From contig NIVC01004906.1 of assembly GCA_002269645.1 (NCBI GenBank), positions 1 through 31,851 on the forward strand: a stretch of 31,851 nt of DNA. Reading direction: 5' to 3'. Source of the stretch: Macrostomum lignano. Its lineage: Eukaryota. The notes under the pieces are model-generated. The model saw only the letters and a list, made by a program, of their open reading frames with translations. It was not told the DNA's origin and searched no databases. Shown one piece after another: positions 4,362 through 30,165 of the stretch. Made by a program: the position numbers and the translations under genes. Positions within the stretch are counted from its first letter, which is position 1. Each line of letters starts with the position of its first letter.

Positions 4362-4544
4362 GGCGGAATGCTTTAATTTATTGAAGCGAAGTTTTGGGGA
4401 TTACAAAAACGAAATAGGGGATAATGCTTTTTCGGATGCCGACGGCAATAGCGGGAAGGGGTGCTTCCTCGCCGATGAGACTGAGAGAAAAGTGAGTTCA
4501 GGCAATCTGAAAGGATAAAACAATGATTGCTTGCTAGTTCGGTA

Positions 4545-6906: not shown

Positions 6907-6935
6907 CTAATGCAGCATCAACATAGCAAAGCAAA

Positions 6936-7415: not shown

Positions 7416-7435
7416 CTGTCGGGCGTTGAAGTGCA

Positions 7436-8150
7436 TGAGGTTAGCAGCTAAAGTACGTGAGGTTAGCAGCTAAAGTACATGAGGTTAGCAGCTAAAGTAC
7501 ATGAGGTTAGCAGCTAAAGTACATGAGGTTAGCAGCTAAAGTACATGAGGTTAGCAGCTAAAGTACATGAGGTTAGCAGCTAAAGTACATGAGGTTAGCA
7601 GCTAAAGTACGAGGTTAGCAGCTAAAGTACATGAGGTTAGCAGCTAAAGTACGAGGTTAGCAGCTAAAGTGCATGAGATTAGCAGCTAAAGTACGAGGTT
7701 AGCAGCTAAAGTACATGAGGTTAGCAGCCAAAGTACTGGAGTCTAGCAGCTAAAGTAAATGAGTCTGGCAGCCAAAGTACTGAGTCTTGCAGCCAAAGTA
7801 GAGTCTAGCAGCTAAAGTACACGAGGTTAGCAGCTAAAGTACATGAAATTAGTAGCTAAAGTACATAAGGAAATCCAATAAAGTACAAGTCTAGCAGCCA
7901 AAGTACATGAGATTAGCAGTTAAAGTACACGAGGTTAGCAGCTTAAGTACTGAGTCTAGCAGCTAAAGTACATGAGTATAGCAGTTAAAATGCACGAGTC
8001 TAGCAGCTAAAGTACATGAAATTATTAGCTAAAGTACATGAGGTTATCAACTAAAGTACAAGTCTTGCAGCTAAAGTACGAGGCTAGCAGTAGCAGCTAA
8101 AGTACACGAGTCTAACAGACAAAGTATACGAGTCTAACAGCTAGAGTAAA
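7436..8150. repeat. Minisatellite, 20-22 bp unit, about 33 copies, filling the CCDC51 intron
   Basis: Unit GAGGTTAGCAGCTAAAGTACAT; homogeneous at 7440-7720 and diverging towards 8150. Confidence 0.95.
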
Positions 8151-8207
8151 AAATATATGAACCACAAAATAGTATATATAAATCAAACAATTAAAGCTAG
8201 CAAATAC

Positions 8208-8702
8208 CTGAACTCGCTGAGTTAGACTCTGCTCAGATTTAATTAAATCGTGCTCTCGCAAAATCAATTGCAAATATTTATCTTCTCCTTTCTGATATTT
8301 GTCCATCTCTAATTCAAGCCTGTCGCGTTCCATGCTTAGCGCCTGCTGTTGCTGTTGCAGGGTCCGCCTGTGCTGTTGAGAGTCTAAGAATTTCTCCTCG
8401 GCATTGAGCACAGCTTGTTGAGCTCTACGAACATCGTCTAAACCAATTAGTGATTCGTACCAGCTAGCCAGGGAATTGAAGTATCTCAGCAGGGCGGAAG
8501 AAATGACATTAGTTTGTTGCTGCTGCTCAACTGGCTCCTTCTGCTGCTGCGTTTCTATGGAACTTGCCGATGAAGAATAGTAAGTCACGTGATGGCGCCG
8601 ATAATAACAGTAATGATTATCAAGTCTGCCGAATTTTAACAGACCTCGATTCAATCGAACTGATTGAATAGCACAGACAGAAGAAAGACTGTAGGGTGCC
8701 AT
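8208..8702 (-). CDS. CCDC51: CCDC51 exon 1
   Basis: ATG at 8702 with an Arg/Ser-rich, acid-poor N-terminus (presequence-like). YESLIGLDDVRRAQQAVLNAEEKFL...EDKYLQLILREHDLI is typical of CCDC51. Donor CAG|GTATTT at 8208/8207, 165 codons; spliced product about 324 aa. Confidence 0.88.
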
Positions 8703-8849
8703 GCAAAATAAATATTAATATAATGAAGTAATACGCCACAGCACTACTGCCAGTAGAAAGTAGAAAGTCAAAAAATCTATATAAAACTCATAATCATACA
8801 AATGATAGCACATACAGACGGCCTCTGACAGACTCAGGTGTCCTCAAGC

Positions 8850-9190
8850 ACACTGGGGTGTTTTCTATCACACTGGGTCTCTAATATCCCACTGGGGTAT
8901 CTTCTATCACACTAAGCTGTCCTCTATCACACTGGGGTGTCTTCTGGGCTGTCCACTATCCCACTGGGGTGTCCTCTGGGCTGTCCACTATCCCACTGGG
9001 GTGTCTCTGGTCTGTCCACTATCCTACTCCACTGGGGTGTCCTCTATCATACTGGGGTGTCTTCTGGGCTGTCCACTATCTCATTGAGATGTCCTCTATC
9101 ACACTGGGGTGTCTACTATCACACTGGGGTGTCCACTATCACACTGAGGTGTCCACTATCACACTGGGTGTCCTTTAACATAGGGGGTGT
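8850..9190. repeat. Degenerate minisatellite, about 20-bp unit, upstream of CCDC51
   Basis: Recurrent CACTGGGGTGTC(C/T)(A/T)CTATCA. Confidence 0.85.
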
Positions 9191-9352
9191 TTTTAATACA
9201 CTATAGTTTTCTTTATTTCAAAGGGATAGTTAAAAAGCGTAAATAACAGAGACAAATATATTTAACACAAAACAAAGACAGAAGAAAAAATTTGGGTAGA
9301 TTTTATTTGAAAAGATACTACTAAATGCCACCACTAAACGCGCAAACCATTT

Positions 9353-9361
9353 CACTTCCGG
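9353..9361 (-). promoter_or_regulatory. ETS/GABP-type motif (CCGGAAGTG) in a small CpG patch, candidate CCDC51 promoter
   Basis: CACTTCCGG on + within CGCGCAAACCATTTCACTTCCGGCGG. This is a single short motif, so support is weak. Confidence 0.3.
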
Positions 9362-10020
9362 CGGTACAACAGCAAAAAAACCATGGTGCGAAAAAAATTA
9401 ATGTATTTTAAGAATGTTTTCATATTAAAAAATAAGCACAAACGGACAAAAAATTCAATGTGGAAGACAAAACAACTGTCAGAACAATGGCAAAAGAAAG
9501 AAATTTAGAATTTTTGTTAAAAATTTAAAGCAGCAATGATATGGTTAATAGAATGGAAAAACTGGAGCTTGAATGAAGGCAAAATGAAGACAATCAGCGC
9601 ACGATTCTGCTTTTTTTCAAAAACAAAAATAAGTTTAAATAACAAAAATTGTGTTTGTACTTATTAAAGCGCTATAAATACTACTTATAGCATTCAGATA
9701 AACTTGAATGCGCTACGCTTTTAATGCAATAAGGCAAGTATAGATATTATTCAAGTGTAGAAAGTTCAAAACTTTAGAATGTAGTGCTATTAATAAAAAA
9801 GATTCTTCAAAATGCACTTTTAAACCTGTTATGCATGATTAAATCAACAATAAATCGACTACAATATTATTACAGATTACTATAAAACTAGCAACAGAAA
9901 GTTTCCTTATGGAGTCCTTGGTCAAGGGCTGAATTAGCACGCGTATGTACGTGTATTTTTTGATAATTTTGCAAATCTGCACAGTGACTTAAGCGCTTAG
10001 GCAATTTTTTTAACTCCTTA

Positions 10021-10285
10021 TTGCACGCTTGTGTCAGTGTGTATCAATCAAACTTGCACGCTTGTGTCAGTGTGTATCAATCAAACTTGCACGCTTGTGT
10101 CAGTGTGTATCAATCAAACTTGCACGCTTGTGTCAGTGCGTATCAATCAAACTTGCACGCTTGTGTCAGTGTGTATCAATCAAACTTGCACGCTTGTGTC
10201 AGTGTGTATAAATCAAACTTGCACGCTTGTGTCAGTGTGTATCAAACTTGCACGCTTGTGTTGTGCCAGTGTGTATCAAAAGCAC
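10021..10285. repeat. Minisatellite, 33-bp unit, about 8 copies
   Basis: Unit TTGCACGCTTGTGTCAGTGTGTATCAATCAAAC. Confidence 0.95.
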
Positions 10286-11771: not shown

Positions 11772-14559
11772 ACTGCCGCGTATGCCTCTAATTAAGTGTC
11801 AGATAGACAGACAAGGCTGCAAATGATGTAACATAACAAGTTTTTAAAGCTTTTTTGAATAGATTTGCATGAATAATTTTTGCTCCTTGCTTATTGGGCG
11901 CCCCGAAGGGGGAACTAGATTGCAGGTTAGCTACTATACTTAAAATGAGTAAAATCAGCAATATTGTAAATTAAAATAGCCAACACAAATGCATAATTTT
12001 AGCAACACATAGGGCCTATACATCTTACACTATTGTTACTATAACTTTTTAAAAGTACTTTATACTAGTTATTAAATTTATCGCAAGCTTGAAATAAATA
12101 TGATAGTTCGCAGTGTTTCCTATAGCCAGCATTAGCAACCTAGCAACTAGAGTATGGTATATTAATCACTTGTTTTAGGCTTTTGAGAACCACATTTAGC
12201 TCTTCTTTAGCAAGCCAGACAGAAAATGGCAGGCTTAAACTGCCATTGTCTATTAACACTTTTTTTTGCTGCCATGCTTTCCACCAATAGCTTTTGTTTC
12301 ATATTCCAACTACAATTGTTAGTGCTGATAGACTATTTTGTGATTGACTTGCAAATGCTAGATCTTAGCCCCCAGACCACAGCCACCTGCCCCTCCTCTC
12401 TAGTTTGTGAGTGTCTATGTATAAGAGCTCATTAGCTTTTGCATGTTTATCTCGAATTGTTCATCCTATGGCCAGATTGTCTAGCATTGCCCATTGGAAA
12501 TCTACTTGAACTTGGTGCTATATTTTAATTTGCCTTGGCTTACTATAATCATTTGTCTCCATTTTGTGTACTACTTACTATTTTCGTCTCCATCGCTATC
12601 ATTCTAGCTTTTTCTGCCCATTATGTTATTTGTGCCTGCAACTTTTTCCTATATATTATTGCCCTTTTGTTCTACTTCCTAGCCTAGTGCAATTCTCTGC
12701 TCTTATTGATTTAATTTGTATGAGTAACTTAAGTTATTATGTTACTTACTTAGTACTCTTGTTACCTAAGTAGTAAAAGTAGGCTTTTTGCAATTAGAGT
12801 TTGATGATTTTCTCAATTTGAAGATTTTAAACAGGTCAAAGAATGTTGGCAAGCATTTTCTCATTTATACAAGATACCATCTGTATAGACTCCCATTTTT
12901 CTCAAAATAACATAAGATCCTACTTAAAATAATATATAAAAACCTCAATTCATATTGGTTGGGTCTACAATGTTTGCTGATGTTTGCTAGCCAGACATTT
13001 GCCAGTTGGACATTTGCAAGTGGCAATTAGTTACAGAATTATGCCCTCTTAGGCTTATATGTACTTGCCTTTGACAACTGCAGACATAACACTAATCTAA
13101 TACCACATTCTCTCTACTATTGCTAATAAATTAAAATATACAGGTTGCTAGCAAACTAATACTTACTAGAATGCTCTTTGTCTTCTTGATATTTTGGGTA
13201 TATTTTAGTAATAGGTACCAAAGCAACTATTATAACCAAAACTGTCTAAACTAGTAATAACAAAAGATAGTAAGGTTTGCTAGCTAACAAAAAGTCAATC
13301 AGTGAAAAATTTTGATACTGAAATATTTGCAATTTAGTGGTTTGAAAAAAAAACTATTTTAGTCTACCTTTGATGGTTTATGATGCATAAAAGTTCTAAA
13401 ACAAAATTTAGATAAATTATGCAGTCAACTAGTCTAACATCTAGCATCTAGTTTAACAAAGATTTCTTTGAATGATAAAATATTACAAAGTTTACTTCTG
13501 ACAGTTTTGTATGGCTTTTCCCAGTTTAAGCGCAAAAGAAGATATACCAATTACAAGGGAAATCTCTAGCAAGCCAAGTTTTGAAGCAAATAAAAGAGCT
13601 TGCTAAATGGTAATCTTGGCTTATAGATCAATATTTCTTAGTTCATTAGGAAATCCAAAAGTACATAAATAATTATAATGCAGCTTGTCAAGTGCATGCT
13701 ATCATGCTATCATGGCCAAACTTCATTAAGCAGAGTTTAAAACTGAACAAATTTTCAAAATAGCTTTTAGACACTTTAGATAAGTAAACATTACAAGTTA
13801 TCTGATTGGTTGTTATTTTTGTCTTTTGATTAAAAAGGCTTGATTTTGGCGTAAGTGTATGTACTAGCCTGTACTCATTGTTTAGTGTACATAATATTTG
13901 CCTATTTCTGTATGCATAATAATATTGATAAATAATTTTGTATAGTTCTTACTATGATTTACATGCAAAAAATAGTTAAATAGTAGCCACATTAAACTTA
14001 AGCAAAAATAAAAAACCATTTTATTTTTGTTTTACTACATAAAACATTGGCAATAATTACTTTTTGTTATAAATGCATCCCTAGGACCCTATATATAAGC
14101 AAATTTCACCCCAAATAAATCAGTTTTTTTGTTCTTACCCAAAACTTGCATTCACATTCTCAGACCTTTAAAAATCTTTGGAAAGGAGTTATCAAGTTAG
14201 TTATTCAGTTATAATTTCAAAGTGCTAAGAAATATACTTAAGACATATAAGCATCCCCTGTGACAAATTGGTGGCATAACAGTAGAATTTATAAAGACAA
14301 AGGAAAACACCCCATTACAACTTGGTGTCAACAATGGGAATTTTAATAGAGAAGTTACCCCTGCAACATAAGAAGATGTTATATACCTTTACAAACATGC
14401 AAGCTAAGGCTGCTTCAACCTAGCATTTACTAGCAAATATCATTGCAGATCATGTTAGCTAAGCTGCCTAAAGCTGCTAGGGTTGCACTGCAAAAAAGGC
14501 ATCAATGAAAATGATCCAAAATGTAAAAAAACTACTTCGAAAGTGCCTGTTTAGCTAAA

Positions 14560-15400
14560 CAATCTAATAGACCCAGTGATTCCACCTGAATTTCATGAGC
14601 ACATGGGTCAATCATTTTTATTCTTTGACTCTAAGCTAGGTATTAATTGAATTCTAGTATTTAGATACCAAGAAAATTTGTAGGCTCTACTAGAGGCAAT
14701 CAACTTCTACTTAGATGGCACCTTTGATGCTTTGCTAACACTTTTTGCACAATTGCTAGCTATACATGTGGAGCATCATAGGTTTGTTTAGCCACTTATC
14801 TTTCCTTGCTCCCTGGCAAAACCTAAGACAGTTCCTACCATTTCTTGAGGTCCCACATCAACTAGCACCAAACATTCAGCATTTTTATACGAGATTTTGA
14901 TTTGAAAAAGTCCAGATAACTGCCATTTGGTAGATTTTCAACCTGGAACCAACAAGTTGTCTAATTTCATTTGGGCCAATACATCTATTACAAGGCCATG
15001 TCTAGTAGTCTTAAACAAAAATTAGAACAGGTTGATAGTTTTAACTGTCCTTGTGGCTACACAGCCTGATTGCTTTAGCATTTTTACTTATTGGAGCAAT
15101 CATAGCCTCATTTGAGACATTTGTTGCACTTCCTTATTTTTTTACTTAGTTACAACTAATTCCTTTTTTTGAAAACATTTAGATTGGCAAAATACTTTAA
15201 GATGGAAATAAGTGGCTACCAATTTTCTCATTTCTATCTAGAATATATGGCAGAGGACTCTAGATAGCCAACACTGAGCCAATAACTCAGTTGAGGCTTA
15301 GTACCAACATTTTCAATCAGTTGCTACAATGCTTAAATCCAAATATTTTTTTTAATTGCTTCTGTGTCTGATGGAGTAAGATTACCAAAACTGGCAAATC
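14560..15400 (+). mobile_element. Decayed MULE (Mutator-like) DDE transposase relic
   Basis: Manual translation gives IPPEF...FLFFDS...N*ILVF...NL*AL...FYLDGTFD...LFAQLLAIH...PLIF, FHLGQ, FENI*IG, *ANNSVEA*YQHF and PNIF, matching MULE motifs (DGTF, CxFH, WIG, RTNNxxEAWH). Many stops and frameshifts; DGTF begins at 14714. Confidence 0.85.
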
Positions 15401-16581
15401 CAACTTAATATCAATTACAAGTACTATGCAACTTTTGTGCCATTGCCAACTAACTAGTTGTGAAATATATTATTGTTTTCATATTGACTTTAATGTTAAG
15501 ATACTTTGGGTATTAATTTAAATAGTTTTGATTACATGATAACAACAAAGGGATCACAATGACAGGGATCCCAATCTAATCAATCAGTTTCAATTTTAAT
15601 CAATCTATTTCAATAAAAAAATTTAATTAATTAATTATTTATACAAAAAATTAAAATGTTATTGTTTTTATTTTGTTTACAAACAAAATAAGTATATTTT
15701 ACTTCTATATACTTTGTTATACTATATATGAATTGGGCCCTATATGAGCTATACAACTATAATAAACTTGTTAACACAGTTGACAAATAAAAAGTTAACT
15801 AGTTTACCCAGATCTACTACCAAAGTGTCTAATTGCTATAACTGCCAATTGCAATAATTGCTAATGTCTTGTTACCAAAGTGAATAATAGTAATAGCTAT
15901 ATAGAAATAGAAGTATCTACACTTTTTGGTCCCTATGCTTTTTGGTGCCTAAATTATATAAATTAGAATTGAACACAAAAATATAGAAATTGAACCCTAA
16001 TTTAACAATAAGTGCTATGTCTTGGCAATACTTGTTAACTTTAAAAAATTAAGTTTATTATTCAGTTTGTTAAGCTGAACTAGTTTTTAAATAAAAAAAT
16101 GGTTTAGTTTCATTTAATTTTTTCTCTTGATTTGATTTTTCAAGAAATAAAAAACTAAGATTATGTGATTCAAGAAATCAATACAAAAATAGACTAGTCA
16201 TATAGATTTCAATCAAAACTGATTTATAGCATTGACAAGCATTTCGCTACCCATTAACACGCACGCGGGATGCGTGCTATTGTCCATAGAAAAAAAACAT
16301 TAGTTTAACGAGTTTTTAGATGACCCAAAAATTAATTATTAGATGATTAATTTTTTATTTATACGGTTTATAATTGTAAATTATAGACAACAACTACTTA
16401 TAGCATGAAAATGAGGGGGAAATGTCTAAAGCCATAGTTTCTCTCGAAGAATTAGTATTTTTGATAGATACGCCCTACTCAAACACAGTGTTAATAAAAT
16501 TGTTGTTGCCGTCAATGCAAACACGCATCTTCTTGGTCGGACGTACAGGCCTCGATATGAACTGGCCGAGGAACCGGCTCG

Positions 16582-16879
16582 TCAATTGATTGTGGGGTGG
16601 CATTGCAACTGGTGATCCGTCATCACTTGCGTGCAGACAGTAGAACTGATAGAGCCGCTCGCATTAGCAGAGAAAGACGCCTCATTGGACGGCATTGTGC
16701 TTGTGCTTGGAATATGCCGGCTTAGTGCACAGTTCACTGCCTTGGAACTCCTGAACAGACTGTGGTCCCGGCACCTGGTTAAATTACTTTTGACCGTCTT
16801 CTCACATTTCTGACCGGTAATAAGCATTATGTCTTGCAGCGAATGGCCAGCGGCGTCTAGATCGCACACTCTAGTGACT
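16582..16879 (-). pseudogene. Crypton-like recombinase last exon
   Basis: Acceptor TTCTCCCACAG|A at 16880/16879 completes the Arg of HCIR across a 113-nt phase-2 intron. VTRVCDLDAAGHSLQDIMLITGQKCEKTVKSNL resembles ATxITxLxxAGxxxxxIMxxTGHKSxxSLxxY, with His>Gln and Tyr>Asn changes. Confidence 0.7.
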
Positions 16880-16992
16880 CTGTGGGAGAATCAAAGGAAA
16901 GTAATTTTACATGAACTAGTTAAAACTATTATTTATAAATATACTATTTATATACTATTTATATACCATATCGGAAAACGAAATTTACTTAC

Positions 16993-17188
16993 CTAATACA
17001 GTGATTATTGTAGACCTTGCTTAGACCGGCCCTCGCACTAAGTTTCTTCATAAATTCTTGAAGGAATCGATATCCTCGAGTGGTCTTCTCGGAGAAACGG
17101 TACGGTTTTAAAGATTGGCCTTGGAGAGGCTTCGGAAAAAAACGATAGCGAAGCGCAGGGCCTAAACGGGTATATTTATTCAAATATA
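16993..17188 (-). pseudogene. Crypton-like tyrosine recombinase (DUF3504-type) exon
   Basis: Acceptor CCCCCTCCAG|TA at 17189/17188 and donor AG|GTAAGT at 16993/16992. YLNKY...RFFPKPL...FMKKLSARAGLSKVYNNHCIR fits the Crypton consensus MKxISxxAGLSKxYTNHSIR. Confidence 0.75.
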
Positions 17189-17391
17189 CTGGAGGGGGTG
17201 TAAGATAAGACAGGGGGTGGGGTGGAGTCCGCAACCAAGGAAAGAGGCGAGAACTGAGAGCCAATCAGAAGGCAGCGAGGGAGAGAGATAAATGACATAA
17301 CAAAATTGAACTAGACAGATTCTACTGAGACTGCATTGTCTTTCTCGATCATAAACAACTAGCCTATTTGGAAACACTAGTCAATGCACTT

Positions 17392-17484
17392 TTCTGCAGT
17401 CGGGATGCATGATATTGGAATAACACGACTTGCGCCTACTGGCGCTCGCGTGTTATACCGATATCATGCATCCCGACTGCAGAA
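17392..17484. repeat. 93-nt inverted repeat (hairpin) with perfect 24-bp outer arms
   Basis: TTCTGCAGTCGGGATGCATGATAT (17392-17415) is the exact reverse complement of 17461-17484; inner arms ATAACACG/CGTGTTAT and GCGCC-TACT-GGCGC. Confidence 0.95.
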
Positions 17485-18025
17485 GAATATACCAATATTG
17501 ACAGATTATAATCTTTACATAACTAAGTTTTTATAATTTATAGTATACCTTGCTTGGTATAGCCTTCTATTTGTATATATAAGACATGGCAAATGCATGC
17601 AATTAAATTGATCAAATTTTTCAAAATTTAAAAAATATGCTAGTTTAACAAAATGAATACTGCTTTTATCAGGAAATTTAAACATTTTGTAAATTATTAA
17701 TTATATTTATTGTAGGATTACTTTTTTATTATTATTTTGGCATCACTAACTTTGAGGCAATAATGCAATTGAGGCAAGAAGCAGAAGAAAGCTGGGCACC
17801 AAAAAGCATAGAAACCTAAATAGATAATATAGTATCTTACTATTTATTAAGGCCATAGATAAGCTATAGGCCTACCTATTTATGTTAGCCTAGCCTAGGT
17901 AATATAAAAATAGTGATTAAAATAGGCCTAAGCATAAAAATCCATGGGCAAAACATATAACAATAGTATAGGCCTAGTTCTTCAGTGAGGGTCTTTTGAC
18001 TTGCTAAGATAGGCGGCCTACATAG

Positions 18026-18917
18026 TGTAGAAGGGCCTATGTTTAAATTAGTATTTTCCCACAAAATCAAATTCCCACCAAAATAACAAATACCGTATAA
18101 TTTGTTTTAATTCACAAATTTGTTTTATTGAATAATTTTTGTTTTAGCGAAGTGAATAAATTTGTTTTAATGTTGTAGCACAAACCAATAAAGAAAGACT
18201 TTGACTAGTATAAATATAAGGTATACTAAGGTATACTAAATATAATATAAGGTATACTATAAATATATTAACAGGAAATTAAGATTTGGTTCTTCTGAAT
18301 TAGTCCTCTGAAGCAGTATTGCAGACTAAGTTACAGTGTTGGATAGCAAAGAGCATTTTGCCAGTACAGTGATGAGCAAGGATTGCCAGTAAAGAGGGTG
18401 GAATACCCAATGTAAAGGATGGAATACCCAGTGTAGAAGGGTGGAATACCCAGTGTAGAAGGGTGGAATACCCAGTGTGAAGGTTGGATTACCCAGGAAG
18501 GGAGAATTTTCAGGTTGCTCAGATTAGCGTGATGCAGTTCTAAGTTGTGAGAGACAGTAATAAAAGAAGCTGGAAACCTCTTGGTCTGTAGTAAACGCCG
18601 TGTTTGGACTATAGAGTAGGAATTTAGCAGTAGTCAGCAGTGTTTTACCTCTTGGGCACTGAAGCTACCTAGGGTAATTTGTAGCAACAATAGCCTATAA
18701 CATAAAAAGTACATGTAAGTTTAGAAATAAGATTCTAGGAAATAGCAAATTTAGTGCATATTAGTACAGCTAAGTAGGATTAAATAGGCAGAAATAGATA
18801 TAAACCTGCAACAACTTGGTGACTAATTGGTGGGATCTCAGTAGGCAGCGATTAGGCCTATAACAACTTTGTGGCATTAGTGGGATTCTGAGAGATAGAG
18901 GAAACAGGCCTGCTACA
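18026..18917 (+). repeat. 5' LTR (892 bp)
   Basis: Aligns with 26610-27517 (about 51 substitutions plus indels by hand); TATAAATA at 18209; AATAAA near 18559; internal 22-bp repeat. Confidence 0.95.
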
Positions 18918-18920
18918 ACT

Positions 18921-18939
18921 TGGTGGCAGCGGTGGGATT
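18921..18939 (+). promoter_or_regulatory. Primer binding site complementary to the tRNA-Leu 3' end
   Basis: TGGTGGCAGCGGTGGGATT, 3 nt after the LTR. Its reverse complement AATCCCACCGCTGCCA-CCA is the 3' end of animal tRNA-Leu(AAG) as recalled. Confidence 0.9.
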
Positions 18940-19010
18940 GAGGAACCGGCAAAAATCTAGTATAGTGTTTTAAGTAATTAAAAGTACATTTTAAAAGTAC
19001 ATTAGTTAGG

Positions 19011-19948
19011 ATGGCTACAGGAATTAATGATGCAATGGCACTTTTAGCTGAGGAGATTAGGAACAAATTAGAATTAGGACCATTAAGGCATGTGAAGATA
19101 CAGAAGTTTACACCTAGCCAGGATATTAGGATTTGGCTCACTGCTTTCGACCAGAGGTGTGAAGCAGAAGGAATAGAAGTAGAGCATAGGAAGACTAAGC
19201 TATTAGCTAACCTAGATCTAGCAACAGCATTTGCTGCATTGCAAAGGCTGAATTTGCCTGATGAGCTACCCTATGAGGAGATTAAGGAACGCCTAGTAGA
19301 GAGGTTCAGTAGAATAGGTAGTGCATCAGAATTTTGAGAGGAATTTTGTGGGAGAATGCAGGGTAGGAATGAGACTGCGGAAGCCTATGCCGATGCATTG
19401 ATTGAGTTGTCCACAAGGGCTTTTCCTAATATGAACGCTGAACAGCGCGAGGAGGAAGTAGTTGAACAGTTTATTAAGGGGATAAGAATCCCAACAGACA
19501 CTAGGGAGAAGCTAATTTTTGCGCAGCCAGCTAATCTGCAGGAGGCTAGGAGAATGTTGCGTAGCATATGTCACACAAAGGAGGTGTGAAGATGGTGAAG
19601 GAGGGAGAGGATGAGCAGCAGAAGCTACAGGAGCTGGTGAGACAGCAGAAGGATGGGCTGGAATAGCAGAGGAAGAGAATTGAAGAGCTCATGGCGTATA
19701 AGCCACTGTACAAGCCAGGGCCTCAGCCATGTCCAGCTCAGATGCCGCGTCAAGCATTCTAGCAGCAGCCGCATTTCAGCCACAAATTTCAAATATGTAT
19801 CGGCCCAGGCCAAGGAATGAGTTCATAGGCAAATCATTTTGTGCTGCAGCCAGGAAAGTGTGCAGTCTGCCAGAATCCGGGACCGATAAGGCCTGGTTTT
19901 GACCATCAGTGCCGCCTGTTCCGCAATTGAGGTAATCAGGGAAACTAA
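19011..19948 (+). pseudogene. gag: gag (interrupted)
   Basis: MATG...QKFTPSQDIRIWLTAF...GRMQGRNETAEAYADAL.ELSTRAFP...VVEQFIKG. Stop at 19335, 1-nt shift at about 19588, then a Gln-rich segment with TAG stops, CAVC...HQC, and an end at NQGN-TAA (19946-19948). Confidence 0.85.
19939..19945 (+). promoter_or_regulatory. Candidate -1 ribosomal frameshift slippery heptamer G GGA AAC
   Basis: X XXY YYZ pattern immediately before the gag stop. The -1 frame is open for about 40 codons and is the same frame as PR/RT. Confidence 0.65.
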
Positions 19949-22900
19949 AGTTTGAAGGTCGAGAGACAAGGCCACGTCCCTCCAGAAAATTTAATTGCAA
20001 AATGAAGGCCTCTAAGTGTGATTCTCAAGGTTGGCAAACTGTCCCCATTCGAAAGAGACATGCGTGATACAACTGTAAATAATGCGTTTAATGCACCTGC
20101 ATCTGCACCATCTGTATTTTCTGCATCTGCATCTGCCGCATCGCGATATGTTGTCCCTGCATCTGCTGTTGATGAGTCAGCATCAGCCGATGAGTCCCGA
20201 GAAGAAGAAGAAGAACCCGCACTTGAAGCAAGCCAACCAAAGCCGAAAAAGGTAAGCAAGTGTAAAGTTTTTGTCAAATCTAAGGTAGAACTAGTGAATC
20301 ATAAAAGTTACGAGGCAATAGTAGTAGGCAATATAGAAAAACAGGACTTTTATTAGATACGGGTGCCAGAAACAATTTCTTAAGTCAATCAGTGTGGTCA
20401 AAACTATTCGAACAAGATCAAATTAGGGAGACGAATAAGAGAGTTTCCACATTCGATGGAACGAGAGTTCAGTTAGATGGCGAAGTACATACTGCAGTGA
20501 AATTTAGAGACTTTGAAATCGAAATTGATTTCCTACTATGTAGCCATGAGTGTGATAACATACTCGGAATGGAGTTTTTCCTAGAGCAGTGTGAGAGCAT
20601 TCATCAAACAAAAGGCATGCTTATCTTGAAAGAGGGAATGTGTATTCCTATGCAGTACACCCACCTTCTGGTAAAGGTTTGCCGAGTATATATGCAGGAG
20701 AAGGCAGTCATTCCACCAAATAGTGCATTGCGAATCCGTATGCCTAGCAAAAAATTCTGAATCTAATTATGGAGCTCCAATGACAATTGAGACAATTGGA
20801 AATGGTGTGAGAGCAAGAGAAGAGACTCTGGAGATGAATCCAACTCTAGTGACTAGCGTGAAGGAGTAGCTATAGTGGAAGTCGTGAACTCGAGTCTAGT
20901 AGAAGTTAACTTGCCAAAATCATCGCTAGTAGGTTTAGCCAAGCCAATGAGAGCTAGAGAACTTACCTATCTAACTAGTGAGAAAAATCAATCAGAGCCA
21001 GTTACTGAGCGAGTCGATCAGGCGCAATCTAATGACAAGTCTTGGATTAGTGAAATTAATATTAGCGAGAACTTAACAAAAGAGAAAAAGGAGAAAGTGA
21101 TTCAGCACAGTGAAGCCTTTTCGCAAAATGAATTGGATATGGGTCTAACTCAGCTAGTGACACATGAAATTTCATTAAAAGATGAGACGCCTGTGAGGAT
21201 CCCAACTAGAAGGATTCCCCCTCATCTTTAGAAGCAGGTAGACACTCAGTTAGATGACATGCTAGCTAAGAACTTAATTTGACCATGCTACTCTACGTAC
21301 TCAACACCCTTAGTGATTGTACCCAAGAAGGATAATACTATTTGCACTGTGAGTGATTTCAGAGTACTAAATTCTAGGGTAAATTATTTCCCATATCTGT
21401 TGCCTAATATTCAGGAAACTTTCTTGCATTTGATGGGCAGTCAGTACTTTAGTAGTCTTGACCTAAATTCTGGTTATTGGCAGGTTCCAATTAAGGAAGA
21501 GCACAAACACATGACTGCATTTTCAACTTTAACTAGAGGGCAATTTGAGTATTAGGTGATGGCGCAAGGCCTATCTAATGCACCAGGCATTTTTCAAAGG
21601 CTTATGAATCTTGTATTGGCGGGCATTCAGCACAAATATGCCATGTCATACATAGATGACATTGTGACTTATTCGAAATGATTTGAAGAGCATTTAGAGC
21701 ATTTGAAGGAAGTTTTCCAAAGACTTATTAATGCAGGACTAAAGTTGATAGCTAAGAAATGTAATTTATTCCATAGTGAGCTAAAATATTTAGGCCATGT
21801 GATTGGGAGAGAAGGAATTAAGACCAACAAGATGAAAATAGAAGCTATTAAGAGTTGGCCGAAGCCAAAGGAGGTGAAGGAATTACGAAGCTTATTAGGA
21901 TTATGTAACTACTATAGTCGCTTTGTCAAAAATTATGCCAAAGCCGTGTATCCCTTGTTTCAATTGACTCGGAAGGGAGTGCAAAATTTTCAAGCAAAAT
22001 GGACTAAGGCTCATGATTAGGCATTTGAAGAATTAAAAAATAGAATGATGTCAACAGAAGTTTTAGCTTATCTGGAGTTTGTAGACGATGAAAATGTTAA
22101 ATGGTTTTAGACACTGATGCTAGTGATGGACGCATAGGAGCCTGTTTAGGTCAAATCCAGTCAGGTGGCATCAAGAGGCCTATAGCATATTTCAGTCGTG
22201 CTATGAAGGAATTGGAGAAACGGTATCTTTTTACTAGAAAGGAACTATTAGCTTTAGTAGACGTGATGAAGCATTTTAGGTTTTTTTTAATATGGAAGTG
22301 ATTCCTAGCGCGCACTGATCATAAAGTAATTATGTGGTTATAAAAGCAGACAGAAGCTCAAGGAATTCTAGGTCAATGGATAGAATGATTAAATGAGTTC
22401 CAGTTTGATATAGAACATAAAAGTGGGGCAAAACATTCTAACGCAGACAGTTTGTCCAGAAGACCGGCAGAAGAAGGCATGAGTGTCAGGAAAGAAGGTG
22501 TGAAAGCCAGTAAATTTATGAATGAAGAAGGCATGAGTGCCACGAGATAAGGCATGAAAGCCAGTGAATCTGTGAATGAAGATGGTGTGAGTGCCATGAA
22601 AGAAGGTGTGAGAGCTGTGGAAAACTGTAGTGAAGGAGAGATGCAGACTCTGCATCCCACTGATTCAGAATCTAGGATTGGGTCATTAATCTCAAGAGAG
22701 AAAGGTGTGAAAGAAACTGATGTGTCAGCACTAAGTTCAAGCAATATGCAATTGAACCGAGACACTGATCCTGAACACATGAAGAATGATATGCCTAAAG
22801 TTAAAAAATTATTGACTGATTATTTGCCAGTACCCTTGAAAAAGGAACAGATTGTAAAAGCTCAGAGAGAGGACGCAGCAATTTGTACATTAGTTAAATA

Positions 22901-22982
22901 GAAGCAAGATAAGCTGTCAGTTCCCCCATCTCAAGAGAGCAACTCAGCTGAGTTAAAGCAGTTAAGCAAGCATTATGAGAAT

Positions 22983-24188
22983 ATGAAGCTAGAAAAGGAA
23001 ATGCTCATTATTGAAGAAGATCAGAAATGGAAAGTCGTCTTGCCTAGATCCTTGGATAAGCTAGTTCTTAGCAATCTACATGATAGCCTACTAGCCGGAC
23101 ATTTAGGCAGGGACAAGACAATCCAGTGTGTCAAGGAGAGATTTTGGAGGCCAGGTTTAGTCACCGCAGTAGAGAAATATGTGGCGGAGTGTATTCCGTG
23201 CCTAGAGAGCAAAAGAGGTCATAAGATCCAGGCGCCAGTACTGTCATTTCCAATCAGTGAACCATTTCATAGATTGCATATAGACATGATTGGGCCAATC
23301 TTGAAAGTAAGCAAAAGAGGGCACCAGTATGTTCTAACTATAGTGGATAGTAACACGCGATACCCATTTGCATTCCCAATGCGTAATCAGAAAGCAGACA
23401 TGATTATCAAATTATTACAAGAGAGAGTGTTCAGTGAGTATGGCCAGTGCCATTGGATTCACACGGACAATGGTAAAGCATTTACTAGCAAGCAGTTTAA
23501 TTTGTTTTGCGATTTGTATAATGTTAAGCATATATGCACGACCCCATACCATGCCCAAAGTAATGGTTTGGTGGAGCGATTTAATAAACAAATTAAATCA
23601 ATTATTACTTGCTTAATAGAGAAAGACCACAGTGATTGGGATCTGCTAATCCCAGCAGCATTAGTAGTAGTCAGAACCAGTGTGAACCAGACCACCAGAT
23701 ATTCACCTCATTTTCTATTAATTGGAAGAGAAGCAGTTTTGCCTATGGATAGTGAGCTCAGGGAGTCAAATAATTACGCTAATTATCCAACGTATGCTGC
23801 CGAACACACAAAGAGGCTAGAGAGTGCAAGAAAACTTGTGAGAGAGAAGTACAAGAAGGTGCATAGCCATAGACAGGAAAATGCAGAAAATCAGAAAAAG
23901 CCCAAAAATATCGCACTAGGAAGTCTAGTACTAATAAATAATCTGCAATTAGAGAATGAGGAGTCAAATAAGTTTTATAGGAAAAAGAGAGCAGCTTACA
24001 AAGTGCTAAAGCAGATTTCGGAGGTTGTCTTCAAGATCCAGAAGGAAGAAAACAGAGAATTAACAGGCAATAAACTAATAGTGCATAGTGACTACATGAC
24101 ATTAGTACCGAACTCAGCTAGAGAGCCAATAGATAAGGGAGGCCAGCCCAGTATGCCAACTGCAGAGCTTCAAGATAAGGGAAGCTAG
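22983..24188 (+). CDS. Integrase domain, still an open 401-codon frame
   Basis: HHCC (H..LAGH...C..C), D (HIDMIGP), D (HTDNG) and E (SNGLVERFN). Confidence 0.93.
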   Translation: MKLEKEMLIIEEDQKWKVVLPRSLDKLVLSNLHDSLLAGHLGRDKTIQCVKERFWRPGLVTAVEKYVAECIPCLESKRGHKIQAPVLSFPISEPFHRLHIDMIGPILKVSKRGHQYVLTIVDSNTRYPFAFPMRNQKADMIIKLLQERVFSEYGQCHWIHTDNGKAFTSKQFNLFCDLYNVKHICTTPYHAQSNGLVERFNKQIKSIITCLIEKDHSDWDLLIPAALVVVRTSVNQTTRYSPHFLLIGREAVLPMDSELRESNNYANYPTYAAEHTKRLESARKLVREKYKKVHSHRQENAENQKKPKNIALGSLVLINNLQLENEESNKFYRKKRAAYKVLKQISEVVFKIQKEENRELTGNKLIVHSDYMTLVPNSAREPIDKGGQPSMPTAELQDKGS

Positions 24189-24698
24189 GCGGCAGAGGCA
24201 ATTTGCAAGGGAAGCCAGTCCAAGAAGACGACAAGAGCTAGACCAACTAAGAAGCTATGTGAACAAAAGAAGAGTCATCATCAGATGAAGAAGACCAAAT
24301 CAAATGGCAGTGCAAAATCCGTGATGGAAATGAATCTGTAAGAGGAAGCGATTTAGAGATAGGAGCAGAAGTAGAAGTTAGGGAGGAAAGAAGTGAAGGA
24401 GAGAATACACAGCGTGAGAGCTTAGAGGAAGAAAGTGAGGAAAGTGAGAAGGGAGAAGAATCAGAGCTTGAGCACAAGGGAGAGAGAGAAAGTGAGGAGG
24501 AGGTTGCACGCGAGCACAGTGAGTCAAAGGAGGAGATATCACATGCCAAGCAGAGTGAGAGACAGGATGACGCAATACTAGCTAAAGGTATAACAGGCGC
24601 AGTCAGATTAAGCCCCCAAACAGATGTCAGTGCTATCTGAAAAGGCTAATCTCTGTGTGGAGCCTATTATAGGGACTAAAATTTTGAGTCAGGGGAGA

Positions 24699-24952
24699 AT
24701 TGGCAGCGAGGGTAAGGCACAGAGCAAACAAACAAGTGGGATTTCATTGGGTAAGGGAATGAAATCAGAGCAGCCAATTAAAATCCAGCTATTGGGAAGG
24801 CCAGGAGTGGTCAACTGGGAAATCGGGGCAATCAGCCAATGAAAATTCAGCTTTTGATTAAATGAATTGATGGGCAAATTAAAACAAACAACGCCTAGGG
24901 TGGGGTGCCACGCCTATATAAACAAACACCCAGAGGTGAGAGGAAGTCAATT
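24699..24952 (+). promoter_or_regulatory. Internal Pol II promoter candidate: five CCAAT/ATTGG boxes plus TATA
   Basis: ATTGG at 24699, 24746 and 24791; CCAAT at 24774 and 24836; TATATAAA at 24915-24922; TCAATT at 24947. Confidence 0.6.
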
Positions 24953-24996
24953 ATAGTCATGTTGACAGCTAGTAACCGTTTTGGTATTGATTGACC

Positions 24997-26103
24997 ATGT
25001 TGGATTGCAATAGTTCCGTAATGGAAGATACGATTGATATAATGGCGGAAGACAATATCTTAGACAAGATTTTAGCTGACATTGAGATAGGAAGTGTAGA
25101 GGAAATTGAAGTAAGTGTGAGTGCAAAGACATCAGGAGACAACGCCGTGATGGCAGCGGAACTGGCAAAGATGTCAGGTGACAACGCCGTGATGGCAGCA
25201 ACAACGAAGTCATCAGGAAATGACACGGTGACGATAGCAGCAGTGGCGATGACGCCCAACAACAGCTCCGTGGTGGCGGAGGATGAAGAGGATCGCCCAA
25301 CCAAGCAGCTGAAGTCGGTGATTATCAAGAGGACATCTACTGAGACAGAAGGTGCGCAGTCAGCTAAGCGGCCTGCCCTGGGGAACCAGCCATTGGTTCC
25401 ACACAACCCAAAGGCCCGAGCGCAGCTGCTTAGCAACCAAGCCAACAGGCCAGTGCCTGTCATTCTGGCCATCATGAAGTGGAAGCCACAAGGCATTTGT
25501 CTCGCCAGTCAATTCCAGCTGATTCAGCCGAGGCTGCCGGCAGCAGTTGGTAGGCGAGGACAACAAATAGCAGCGCAGCAAGCTGCGAGGGCCAGCAGCC
25601 ACAGCGGCAGCAGCAGCAGCAATCGGCGGGCAGCCTGCGCCAAAATTGATGGCAGCTCTGACGCCAGTGCCGTCTACAGTTCCGAAGCGGCCACAGGATG
25701 CGGCAGCTTGTGGGTCAGCCAGCGCTGCAGACCTCAGCCTAGGCTCTGACTTCCCGGCCATGCTCGACAGGATCCCAAGAGCTCAACATGACCAATTGAA
25801 ATGCTTTATCAAGATGTTGAAAGGGCACCTGATGCGCATAGTGTATCTACGCACAGATCGGCCAACTCTATGTCGGTGCATGCAGGCCAAACCAGTGCTG
25901 CGTCTACTGGTGCAGCAATTTGATCTGGAGTCTAGAATCGCAGCGTGGCGCCAAGCAATCCAATATGCGCTGCTTAATCTGACACAGGTCGGGCAAACTT
26001 TCCATTGACTGCTTCTACAAATTGAGATCCGCTGGATGGCGGATCAGCTCGGCTGCCTTACCACGATCAGCTGCCTGAGGAATTCAAACTCGAGCGTAAT
26101 TAA
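24997..26103 (+). CDS. ORF3 of the retrotransposon, unknown function (about 360 aa after repairing one stop and 1-2 frameshifts)
   Basis: ACCATG at 24994-24999 (alternative ATGs at 25021 and 25042). A 252-codon ORF overlaps a 120-codon ORF (25646-26008) that reads on past a TGA to about 26103. Acidic, then Ala/Ser-rich, then a Leu-rich helical-looking C-terminus; no signal peptide or TM stretch. Confidence 0.6.
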
Positions 26104-26597
26104 GTAAATGAACTTTTGCAATTGTGAACTTACTTTTATTTGCATAAATTTCTATGCTAGTGCTATTTTTCTTTGTGAATTGCTTTTAATTGCGTGAATA
26201 CTATTTTTTGCGCGAATTACTAGTGCTAGTGCTAATTTTTCAGTGAATCTGTTTTATTTAGTGTAATTTTAAGACAATGCTATTTTTCTTTGCATGAATT
26301 TATGTTTTTGCTCTTATTTGGTTGAAGTTTCTGTACTTGTTTTTTGTGAAGTAGCCTTTAGAAATTTCTTATTTTCTGCATGCACAATTTTTATTTTATG
26401 CTTATTTTTCTTTGGTGAACAATTGCTTGATGACTTAGTGCTTTTCAAATGTTTATTAGCAACTACATTGTCTTGTATTTGTGCCATTAATACATTGCTT
26501 AGTTTTTTATGAATATGTATTGTTGTTGTTTTCCATTTATTACTTATATTAGTAGGCCTATCATTTTGTTCACTTAAAAATTTGCAAAATAATATTC

Positions 26598-26609
26598 AGG
26601 GAAGCCAAC
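26598..26609 (+). promoter_or_regulatory. Short polypurine tract candidate
   Basis: AGGGAAGCCAAC directly abuts the 3' LTR; it is short for a PPT. Confidence 0.4.
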
Positions 26610-27517
26610 TGTAGAAGGGCCTATGTTTAAATTAGTATTTTCCCACGAAATCAAATTCCTGCCAAAATTTACAAGTACCGTATAATTTGTTTTAATTCAC
26701 AAATTTGTTTTATCGAATATTTTTTGTTTTAGCGAAGTTAATAAATTTGTTTTAATTTTGTAGCGCAAACCAATAAGGAAAGACTTTGACTAATATAAAT
26801 ATAAGGTGAAGCTAGAACATTTTCTTTAACCTCAACCTTTTGGGTTCCTAACTCAGTTAATAGGAAATTAAGATTTCTTGGTTCTTCTGAATTAGTCCTT
26901 TGAAGCAGTATTGCAGACTAAGTTACCATGTTGGATAGCAAAAAGTGTTTTGCAAGTACAGTGATAAGCAGGGATTGCCAGTAAAGAGGGTGGAATACCC
27001 AGTGTAGAAAGGTGGAATACCCAGTGTAAGGGTGGAATAGGGGCCTACCCAGTGTAGAAGGGTGGAATACCCAGTGTGAAGGTTGGATTACCCAGGGAGA
27101 ATTTTCAGGTTGCTCAGATTAGCATAATGCAGTTCTAAGTCATGAGAAACAGTAGGCCTAATAAAAGAAGCTGGAAACCCCTCAGTCTATGGTAACACCG
27201 TGTTTGGACTGTAGAGTAGGAATTTAGCAATAATCAGCAGTGTTTTACTGCTTGGGCACTGAAGCTACCTAGGGTAATTCGTAGTGACAATAGCCCATAA
27301 CATAAAAAGTACATATAAGTTTAGAAATAAGATTCTAGGAAATAGCAAATTTAGTGCATATTAGTACAGCTGAGTAGGATTAAATAGGCAGAAATAGATA
27401 TAAACCTATAGCAACTTGGTGACTAATTGGTGGGATCTCAGTAAGTAGCGATTAGGCCTGTAACAACTTTGTGGCATTAGTGGGATTCTGAGAGATGGAG
27501 GAAACAGGCCTGCTACA
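26610..27517 (+). repeat. 3' LTR (908 bp)
   Basis: TGTAGAAGGG...GGCCTGCTACA followed by the ATAG TSD. Confidence 0.95.
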
Positions 27518-28554
27518 ATAGTCTTAAAAAATCAAATTTGAATAAAAAAGCATTTTTGCAAAGAATAGGCTAACTTTGCTTTGCAATACAATTATAGAGT
27601 AAAACAAAAAGTTCTAAGTTTTTGAAGCCCTCTAAGTTTTTATAAAATGAAGTATTTAAAGTTAAAGTAGGCCCCTATATATATTATTACTAAATATTAT
27701 ACAATTTATAGCATTGTAGCATAACTTTAACTTGGCCTTGGGTTGCTCTATATCAGTTAATACATTAGCTTTTTTATATCTCGACTCTGCACCCATGACC
27801 CATGGCTTAACTTCCAGAAATTCTATAGGCACTAGGGCCTAGTCTTATCTTTACAAACTGCAAGAAATTTCTGTCTTACCCAATATCTAGGCCTAGCAAA
27901 TATCAACTAGAAAAAATTTCTTTTTTATACTTTTTATAGAGAGATAAATAGACCTGGGAATAGGATAGGGCAGGGCGGCTAGGCCTATATAGATTTTATT
28001 AGGCCTAGGCCTAAAAAGAAGGTAGAGCACACTGTTGGTCGGAGTGCTATATTCTAAATCTCAAATATTATAGGCCTAATGATATTTATTAGATCTACAC
28101 ATTGCCCGGCGCCGGCGTTCAAGAAATTGGCAGCCAAATTCAGACATACAATCAATAATCGCATCGCGCGTCGAGGTCCACGCGCAAACGTAAACAATTT
28201 TATATAATTTAATACTTGCATGCGATCCTAACTTATGTAGCTTATTTTGAAAAGTTTTATTATACTTTAAAATAAATTCATAGTAATTTTTTATTTACCG
28301 CTGTAACTTTAGCTTACATCTTTTCGTTTTAAGAGCCATATTAAAAATTATTTGTTTGACTTAAGGCATGACTCGGGACGTAGTTTAATTTTAGAAGTGC
28401 CAGATAAAATTGTGCAATACACTCCTTCACTTCACTTTATGTTATTTAATTATCAACAGTAAAGCAACCGGCCGTTTTTGTTTACGTATTTAATATCAAA
28501 TTAAAGTTTCTGACAGCCTTATTTTTAACTGCTTTTGACTGATTGTTAGTAACG

Positions 28555-28570
28555 ATGCCGAAGAATAAAG
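28555..28570 (+). CDS. EIF1A: Probable eIF1A coding exon 1 (MPKNK-G), rest of gene outside window
   Basis: AACG-ATG CCG AAG AAT AAA G|GTATGA. MPKNKG is the eIF1A N-terminus, and a 16-nt first coding exon with a phase-1 intron is the recalled conserved structure. Acceptor-like TTTCTGACAG at 28507-28516 and CpG patches at 28100-28200. Only 5 codons are visible and exon 2 was not found. Confidence 0.6.
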
Positions 28571-29460
28571 GTATGATATGAATCTATTAATCCCATTTTC
28601 TACTCAAACTTTTATTAGGCCCCTAGGCAATCATTATCAATTACACTATCATTTTTAATTCTAAATTTTGTCGGTCGGTAGTCATTCACTATTAATTTAT
28701 TAGGTATTTGATTTTATCTCTTTGTTGTAAGTAATTTATGTTAAAATCGTTTTCCATTATTTATAATGTAGAATGAATTCCGGTTGTTTCGCCCCTAGAC
28801 TGTTTTAGCCATATTCTGTTTGCCCATAAACCAGTTTGTCTATAGGCGTTTTGGTCAAAATGGTGTTTATGCCATAGTCCAGAAGGTGGCCTTTACACCA
28901 GAAAATTCAGGCATATTTTTGCCATCACTGACAATCTTGGCATACTGCATACATTTGGTGTATAGAATTTTCAAGTTTAGCATGAGGTGTACACAGTTGG
29001 CATACAAAAGATAAGCCAAGTTCAGGGCTAATGTAATTGTGTAGTTAAATATCAACTAAGAGGTGTGTTTACAAAAATTGGGAACTAAAAAAACAAAAAT
29101 ATTAATGCAATTTACAAAAAGTAAAGATTAAAACAAAGCCAAATGATATTAGGTTTAGATTTTAGCAAAAAATACTCCTTGTAACATTTAGTACAATTGT
29201 TATGTTTTTTTAAAATATGTTTTTTAAAAAAATTGGCATATAAACAACTTTGAGCTTGGCATAAACATTTTTAGAGCCTAATTTTGTTAGTGTAAAATTA
29301 AAAAACCATAAATTTTTATATTGTCATATGCCTGCCATGATCCAGACTATGGTACTACCCGAGAAAAAAAAACAAACCAAACTTGCTAAGTACTTGGTAA
29401 GTCAACAATGCAACCTTGTGGCAAGTACTGCCTAAGTACTGTCTAAGTTTTCCAAGTACA

Positions 29461-30165
29461 CTCAATAAGTACTTTCCAAGTATGCAATGTTTTCTCCAGT
29501 CACTTCTCAAGTACTTTCCAAGTATGCAATGTTTTCTCCAGTCACTTCTCAAGTACTTTCCAAGTATGCAATGTTTTCTCCAGTCACTTCTCAAGTACTT
29601 TCCAAGTATACAATGTTTTCTCCAGTCACTTCTCAAGTACTTTCCAAGTATGCAATGTTTTCTCCAGTCACTTCTCAAGTACTTTCCAAGTATGCAATGT
29701 TTTCTCCAGTCACTTCTCAAGTACTTTCCAAGTATGTAATGTTTTCTCTAGTCACTTCTCAAGTACTTTCCAAGTATGCAATGTTTTCTCAAGTCACTTC
29801 TAGAGTACTTTCCAAGTATACAATGTTTTCTCTAGTCACTTCTCAAGTACTTTCCAAGTATGCAATGTTTTCTCCAGTCACTTCTCAAGTACTTTCCAAG
29901 TATGTAATATTTTCTCCAGTCACTTCTCAAGTACTTTCCAAGTATGCAATGTTTTCTCCAGTCACTTCTCAAGTACTTTCCAAGTATGCAATGTTTTCTC
30001 CAGTCACTTCTCAAGTACTTTCCAAGTATGCAATGTTTTCTCCAGTCACTTCTCAAGTACTTTCCAAGTATGCAATGTTTTCTCAAGTCACTTCTCAAGT
30101 ACTTTCCAAGTATGGAATGTTTTCTTAAATCACTTTTCAGGTACCTTCCAAGTATGCAATGTTCA
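29461..30165. repeat. Minisatellite, 42-bp unit, about 17 copies, in the putative eIF1A intron 1
   Basis: Unit AAGTACTTTCCAAGTATGCAATGTTTTCTCCAGTCACTTCTC, preceded by loose AAGTAC seeds at 29385-29470. Confidence 0.95.

Follow-up and report, generated by a model that had tools for sequence, protein, structure and literature searches.

Why does one 8-bp palindrome, TAGGCCTA, occur in 11 exact copies in 31,851 nucleotides of the flatworm Macrostomum lignano (contig NIVC01004906.1 of assembly GCA_002269645.1; this whole stretch is referred to below as the window), when 100 dinucleotide-preserving shuffles of the same sequence gave 0.59 copies on average and never more than 3? An initial annotation had taken the copies for recurrent micro-insertions at TA dinucleotides, concentrated upstream of the gene eIF1A, and had offered two explanations, namely footprints of a TA-targeting transposon or a new process that cuts at TA and adds variable G/C nucleotides. 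The analysis supports this proposal in part: genuine indels are present, at least one of which is certainly an insertion, and the choice between the two mechanisms is not settled. The reading that we favour, with a probability of roughly one half, is that the motifs are canonical excision footprints of a putative TA-targeting cut-and-paste transposon with G-run termini and a promoter-proximal preference; no such parent element was found in about 50 kb of sequence.

Counts and anatomy of the motif

The strong excess of exact copies held up against shuffling, and the longer variants were located where they had been reported, with TAGGGCCTA at 12010 and 27833, TAGGGGCCTA at 27038, TAGGCCCCTA at 27668 and 28616, and TAGGCGGCCTA at 18010. 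The absence of any copy from positions 1-11.9 kb of the window, which consist of coding sequence and minisatellites, was likewise confirmed. When the GGCC tetramers of the window are sorted by their flanks, TA/TA is the commonest context (n = 11), followed by AG/TA (n = 5), which is mostly accounted for by TAGGGCCTA and by the start of a long terminal repeat (LTR).

The motif excess extends beyond one spot in a sample of only 46 kb. A genome-wide count had been suggested, and the excess is seen in a non-redundant M. lignano sample of 45.7 kb, which contains about 0.3 motifs per kb and in which 14 copies of TAGGCCTA were observed against 0.88 expected. Among the 256 TA-NNNN-TA words in this sample, TAGGCCTA is the sole outlier not due to a tandem repeat, and T and A flank 14 of the 26 AGGCCT hexamers. 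Two contigs used as a negative control (L004 and L005; unrelated 40 kb, 35% GC) contained no copy of the motif. A literature search returned nothing relevant on TAGGCCTA, alone or in combination with transposons or Macrostomum, and the M. lignano genome papers that it covered, the one from 2015 not being among them, are silent on the motif.

Each copy has the form TA-G(2-4)C(2-4)-TA, in which the G-run always precedes the C-run, and GGCC is the filler in 14 of the 19 G-run/C-run motif copies of the 45.7-kb sample. Fillers of opposite order or mixed G and C (TACCGGTA, TAGCGCTA, and TACGCGTA) do not occur in this sample, nor do fillers of the 1+1 and 1+2 type show a convincing excess over background there. 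TAGCTA is found as often as expected (19 versus 19.5), TAGGTA and TACCTA are fewer than expected, and TAGCCTA has a weak twofold excess (8 versus 4.1). The 16 occurrences of TAGGCTA are attributed to a minisatellite containing GGCTAG, the copies not having been located one by one. The filler unit is symmetric, with a sharp minimum of two Gs and two Cs, whereas the bases outside the two TAs are unconstrained, there being no consistent T before or A after them. "Variable G/C", as had been put forward together with an enzyme like terminal deoxynucleotidyl transferase (TdT), is too loose a description of so uniform a filler. A related architecture is seen in TAGCCTAGCCTAGG, present at 17886-17899 in both haplotypes, where tandem TAGCC units share their TAs as in TAGGCCTAGGCCTA (described below), with a one-G filler.

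A G-run followed by a C-run is the product expected from two inverted transposon ends or from two identical 3' overhangs. Given so regular a filler, overhangs fixed at two nucleotides are a better explanation than free addition without a template, since the sharp 2+2 minimum is predicted by the former and not by the latter.

Insertions, point changes, and the hot spot upstream of eIF1A

Three contigs of the annotated Mlig_3_7 assembly are further copies of the window locus. Two of them (L001 and L003) share about 99.4% identity with the window, and the third (L002) is diverged and represents a second haplotype or homeolog of the locus. Indels were called from the joined window flanks aligned with L002 and from an alignment of the 5' and 3' LTRs of a retrotransposon that lies in the window.

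Six clean indels were identified, and each consists of exactly one TA plus a G-run/C-run filler, in exact 6- or 8-bp units. Two of them distinguish the LTRs. At 27038-27047 (TAGGGGCCTA), GGGGCCTA has been inserted into one GGAATACCC unit of the tandem array in the 3' LTR, which gives GGAATA[GGGGCCTA]CCC. All other units of the array in both LTRs read GGAATACCC or GGATTACCC, and because all these sister units lack GGGGCCTA, 27038 is an insertion and the only firmly polarised event. At 27153-27160, only the 3' LTR has the motif (CAGTA[GGCCTA]ATAAAAG), the 5' LTR having CAGTAATAAAAG. Both LTR differences had been called insertions from the start; both indels are seen, and the call is certain for 27038, while 27153 is not firmly polarised. 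Three indels are specific to the window when compared with L002, namely 17923-17930 (AAAATA[GGCCTA]AGCAT versus AAAATAAGCAT) and 17969-17976 (GTATA[GGCCTA]GTT versus GTATAGTT), both of which carry TAGGCCTA and are also present in L001, and 27668-27677 (TAGGCCCCTA; AAAGTA[GGCCCCTA]TATA versus AAAGTATATG). The sixth is specific to L002 (TACTA[GGCCTA]AC, at about 4795-4802 of that contig). By analogy with 27038, the other five can be read as insertions.

The window does contain indel errors, as there are 34 small gaps between it and its Mlig_3_7 counterpart at 99.45% identity, which would be in favour of an assembly or sequencing artefact. We consider such an origin of the motifs very improbable. 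The same copies occupy the same places in L001 (12010, 17867, 17923, 17969, and 18853) and in L003, whose copies equal those of the window across the matching span, 12010 included, and copies are found at orthologous positions in the diverged L002. The differences are exact units rather than homopolymer errors, and the motif is absent from the unrelated 40 kb of similar GC content.

Four further sites differ without a change in length and are not indels. At 18010-18020, TAGGCGGCCTA corresponds to TAGGTGGTCTA in L002, with two C/T differences, and at 27980-27987, TAGGCCTA corresponds to TACTCCTA, with both changes in the G half; neither site can be retained as the micro-insertion it had been listed as. 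The reverse situation is found at 29150-29157, where the window has TAGGTTTA and L002 has TAGGCCTA (about 2578-2585 of that contig), with both changes in the C half. Sites 27980 and 29150 could each be a tandem double substitution (CC>TT in one) or two repair products of one former insertion. The TAGGCCTA copy at 18853-18860 in the 5' LTR is separated by a point difference from TAGGCCTG at 27453 in the 3' LTR, a possibility that the initial annotation had already raised.

The copies common to both haplotypes are TAGGGCCTA at 12010-12018, about 240 bp upstream of the start of the gene Mlig033887g1 and in all copies of the locus; TAGGCCTA at 17867-17874, an older event that is also in L001; TAGGGCCTA at 27833-27841, directly preceded by one extra TA in L002; TAGGCCTA at 27888-27895; TAGGCCTAGGCCTA at 28000-28013, which consists of two units (28000 and 28006) sharing the middle TA; TAGGCCTA at 28071-28078, the copy nearest upstream of the promoter; and TAGGCCCCTA at 28616-28625, at the start of eIF1A intron 1. 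One more TAGGCCTA, at 26553-26560, lies inside the retrotransposon about 50 bp upstream of the 3' LTR and has no second copy against which it could be polarised.

The retrotransposon splits the hot spot. It is a degenerate Ty3/Gypsy-type element on the plus strand (18026-27517) with protease, reverse transcriptase, and integrase domains on fragmented open reading frames (ORFs). Its 5' LTR (18026-18917) and 3' LTR (26610-27517) both have TG...CA ends, and copies of an ATAG target-site duplication stand on the left at 18022-18025 and on the right at 27518-27521. The element is absent from L002, where a single ATAG marks the empty site (...CTACATAG|TCTTAAAA). Because L002 has this exact empty site and an annotated PF01176 eIF-1a gene there, we take its sequence as proof that 17850-18025 and 27518-28625 belong together as a single region upstream of eIF1A; the initial annotation had proposed this by joining the flanks of the retrotransposon.

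The hot spot upstream of eIF1A is real. It comprises 753 bp (17850-18025 plus 27524-28100), with 10 motifs among 107 TA sites, compared with none among 441 in the AT-rich spacer at 12100-16220 and none among 476 in the retrotransposon interior (Fisher's test, 3.6e-9). Polymorphic events relative to substitutions were 4 to 128 in the hot spot and 0 to 308 in the other aligned haplotype sequence (14.8 kb; p = 0.008). The view of a recurrent insertion that duplicates TA is strengthened by this site occupancy and by the four haplotype indels, which add to those of the LTRs. No copy is found in 28079-28615, which covers a CpG-rich segment, the 5' untranslated region, and exon 1; the haplotypes align well there, two short indels apart. 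The events that post-date the retrotransposon (27038, 27153, and 26553 if it is also an insertion) all lie in the end of the element that is nearer to eIF1A, at 1.4-2.0 kb from the ATG, and the 5' LTR, which is now 10 kb from eIF1A, has not gained a motif insertion.

Tight clustering of this kind might also result from a cluster that seeds its own growth by local copy-and-paste. During break repair or replication, through templated insertion of the polymerase-theta type or template switching, a 3' end in TA would prime on a nearby TAGGCCTA, copy GGCCTA, and return. The copies at 17923 and 17969 are only 56 and 102 bp away from the older copy at 17867, and priming on TA microhomology would yield an apparent TA duplication. 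This is nonetheless improbable in our view, as TA is the exact end of all events and no additional bases from the flanks have been copied, the window nowhere offers an identical template for the insert GGGGCCTA at 27038, and the sole match for GGCCCCTA of 27668 is about 950 bp off. It also leaves the first copies unexplained, together with isolated ones such as 12010 and those in a second locus, the spacer between BRF1 and Rer1.

That spacer, available from two haplotypes, contains three further TAGGCCTA copies, 0.5-2.6 kb upstream of Rer1 and all common to both. Outside the retrotransposon, every copy is either no more than about 2.7 kb upstream of a gene start (eIF1A, Rer1, or Mlig033887g1) or in a first intron, a description that most non-coding DNA in this compact locus also meets. 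An 8-bp palindrome with such a distribution, many copies of which are common to both haplotypes, could be bound by a dimeric transcription factor or a similar protein and kept by selection, which would then account for the promoter excess. We give this little credence. Identical 6-8 bp insertions with TA duplication are not made by selection, and the turnover of binding sites runs mainly through point changes. Copies have also arisen inside the LTR of a decaying retrotransposon, and others have been lost or changed between haplotypes (27980 and 29150). Selection could act on top of a mutational process but not replace it.

Proposed excision footprints and the search for a parent element

If the motifs are the footprints of a transposon, its termini and its cleavage geometry can be inferred from the scar, the TA duplication being seen directly at 27038. 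The element would integrate at TA and duplicate it, and its inverted termini would start with 5'-GG, probably as part of a longer G-run or GGCC. On excision, the transposase would cut the non-transferred strand two nucleotides inside each end and leave a 3' GG overhang on both flanks, and end joining would fill and ligate these overhangs into TA-GG-CC-TA. Longer retention or slippage would now and then produce GGG or GGGG, and CCCC. TAGGCCTAGGCCTA at 28000 looks like a repeat visit, in which the element would have inserted again at one TA of an existing scar and left once more, and the bare TA that L002 has in addition near 27833 looks like a footprint without filler. Likely, the element, or chromatin open to it, would prefer the region about 2 kb upstream of the active housekeeping promoter of eIF1A, and this preference would be the reason why scars pile up upstream and the core promoter is clean.

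This anatomy matches the footprint geometry of Tc1/mariner elements. Tc1 and Tc3 leave TA-CA-TG-TA (TACATGTA) and Sleeping Beauty leaves TAC(A/T)GTA by the same geometry. Shared features are the TA on both sides, a short symmetric filler such as two inverted element ends would make, one dominant product with minor length variants, the possibility of repeat visits to a site, and the variant without filler. The filler is different, however, as it is GG/CC here, whereas those elements normally begin CA... or YYAGG...; the GG termini of the putative parent are thus atypical for Tc1/mariner and closer to those of the PIF/Harbinger-ISL2EU group. To our knowledge, the density of scars (about 0.3 per kb; 10 in 753 bp) and their promoter-proximal clustering go far beyond what has been described for the IS630-Tc1-mariner superfamily.

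mPing, a member of the latter kind of element, begins with GGCC and inserts preferentially just upstream of genes, and excision of the PIF/Harbinger-ISL2EU-Spy (PHIS) type is mostly precise. PHIS termini usually begin with GG, or GGG in NuwaI, whereas the described target duplications are AT, TWA, ANT, CWG, TNA, or none (PMC4482050), and here the duplication is TA. ISL2EU duplicates AT within A|AT|T and has GG termini (PMC4482050). The 3-bp TWA duplication of PIF/Harbinger does not agree with the unconstrained flanks outside the TAs.

The proposal of transposon footprints was found to fit in its anatomy, while the search for TA-flanked elements with GG ends that had been suggested along with it gave none. 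For this search, pairs of TAGG... and ...CCTA within 12 kb were scanned for matching 14-nt inverted termini, and the only matches were the motif itself and one hit internal to a miniature inverted-repeat transposable element (MITE) with terminal inverted repeats of about 90 bp (by eye). Footprint and empty alleles, also suggested as a check, were both seen.

Several observations weigh against the footprint interpretation. About 50 kb of non-redundant sequence contains no TA-flanked element with GG...CC inverted termini, no dispersed repeat that begins with TAGG (the matches being only orthologous, LTR, or tandem), and no haplotype insertion polymorphism with TA/GG ends. Among the alleles of the window, L001, L002, L003, L006, and L007, a very small sample, none contains a full element. 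The two known families that were compared do not supply a parent either. MS-Mali, the one Tc1/mariner family documented in M. lignano (35 copies), was rejected on account of its CTGGG ends, and ISL2EU was rejected because the duplication here is TA and ATGGCCAT is found 0 times versus 0.7-0.9 expected. The new events at 27038 and 27668 gave GGGGCC and GGCCCC directly, products that are not expected from a strict two-nucleotide stagger. No outgroup polarises five of the six indels, and a further copy of the LTR that could serve as one was sought and not found. Finally, with about 0.3 scars per kb and no resident copy nearby, footprints would outnumber elements to an unusual degree.

A process independent of transposons, which we think unlikely, would account for the parent element not being found. 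In promoter-proximal chromatin, a putative host nuclease, for example a domesticated transposase, would cut at TA with a 2-nt stagger. Once the overhangs were filled, a polymerase would add two to four Gs to both 3' ends, and end joining would give TA-G(n)C(m)-TA. The Gs might come from a candidate enzyme of the TdT/Pol X kind or from telomerase that primes on the ...TA end, in which case GGG would be added from the TTAGGG template; in sequence, TAGG/CCTA is similar to half telomere repeats. In the hot spots of the flatworm germ line, such a promoter-targeted process would write TA-G(n)C(m)-TA a few percent as often as point substitutions arise. If both ends receive 3' G-tails, Gs followed by Cs are expected, and the new events with their variable run lengths (GGCC, GGGGCC, and GGCCCC) and the strong promoter-proximal hot spot also agree with the process. 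The dominance of GGCC and the lack of a convincing 1+1 or 1+2 excess are, however, too regular for template-independent addition, the strict TA duplication is itself a transposase signature, and for the telomerase variant, a run of four Gs is more than the template would add after TA.

A precedent for such a process is N-addition in V(D)J recombination, where a transposase-derived nuclease makes the break and G-biased addition to both 3' ends yields a G-rich stretch followed by a C-rich one. N regions are heterogeneous in length and composition, in contrast to the one dominant product and the minimum of exactly 2+2 seen here, and we know of no terminal transferase of the V(D)J type in flatworms. 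As an 8-bp palindrome that is over-represented many-fold across a genome, HIP1 (GCGATCGC) of cyanobacteria is also comparable, but the motif described here consists of short insertions at TA in eukaryotic non-coding DNA with local hot spots.

The surrounding locus and what the insertions mean

A chimeric query of three host ORFs showed that the M. lignano proteins BRF1 and hypothetical BOX15_Mlig033887g1 match ORFs of the window with 98-100% identity. BRF1 is encoded on the minus strand, with exons within 1050-4400 and introns rich in minisatellites, and is followed in window order by a gene for 321/322 amino acids and by Mlig033887g1 (about 10.4-11.8 kb, minus strand), after which comes the long spacer. 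Only exon 1 of eIF1A lies inside the window (28555-28570, plus strand; MPKNKG, encoded by ATG CCG AAG AAT AAA G and followed by a GT donor), at the place where L002 has its annotated PF01176 gene. Minisatellites with periods of 16-42 bp (40, 32, 36/24, 24, 16, 22, 20, 33, and 42) crowd the introns and spacers at 115-10261 and 29467-30163, and several are long enough to contain spurious ORFs of 200-340 amino acids.

The locus was found in at least four contigs from two assemblies, three about 99.4% identical and one diverged, and the differences between the window and its twin are mostly small gaps. M. lignano assemblies are known to be redundant and to hide polyploidy, and the presence of the locus in several contigs agrees with this. 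The window and L002 differ by substitutions at 0.8% over 10.3-16.2 kb and at 7.8% in the region of interest (17485-28740), and this jump falls across a 1.26-kb insertion near 16.2 kb. The two sequences seem to have had different histories on either side of about 16.2 kb, for example because haplotypes or homeologs have recombined or undergone conversion there.

Other insertions were found in the contigs, and the ends of those considered as a parent element are unfit for that role (the 1.26-kb insert at 16221-17484, the 311-bp, approximately 480-bp, and 1.3-kb inserts of L002, and a solo-LTR-like insert of L007). The insertion at 16221-17484, absent from L002, is bounded by imperfect direct repeats (TTTATAGCATTGACA and TATACCAATATTGACA) and ends in a near-perfect palindrome of about 90 bp (approximately 17393-17483). 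A guess that its two minus-strand ORFs (16585-17264) encode a Crypton-like tyrosine recombinase received no Pfam support. L002 has insertions of its own in or near eIF1A intron 1 (3066-3459, 1229-2549, and about 4160-4470), none with TA/GG ends. They include a MITE-like element with 56-nt inverted repeats inside the insert of about 480 bp, the 1.3-kb insert with a TTG duplication, and the 311-bp insert with a G14 run inside the hot spot. In the BRF1-Rer1 spacer, L007 has a TG...CA solo-LTR-like insertion of about 700 bp with an A-run duplication that is absent from L006, and the spacer also contains a MITE with inverted repeats of about 90 bp (by eye) in both haplotypes and a reverse-transcriptase-like ORF fragment; these features of L007 are located at 20409-21105, 21690-22260, and 22201-22914.

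Both LTRs of the Ty3/Gypsy-type element hold a 21-22-bp tandem array (AGGGTGGAATACCCAGTGTAGA) of 4-5 units (18395-18496 and 26987-27095), which might act as an enhancer-like module. LTRs of M. lignano are reported to contain heat-shock elements (PMC12801592), and the AGGGTGGAATACCCAGTGTAGA unit does not have the canonical form of such an element. The segment at 24991-26005, which lies between the integrase and the 3' LTR, is unusually GC-rich (54%) and contains overlapping ORFs of 145-252 amino acids on both strands without a Pfam match, possibly an extra gene, env-like or captured.

If the motifs are footprints, they constitute a dense and readable fossil record of transposon visits, with about 0.3 per kb over 46 kb and up to one TA in ten in the hot spot. 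If no parent element exists, they would represent a new sequence-specific mechanism of insertional mutation. By either mechanism, promoters acquire palindromes containing StuI and HaeIII sites at a rate that is measurable relative to that of substitution, and the process therefore shapes regulatory DNA and haplotype divergence in the neopolyploid genome of M. lignano.

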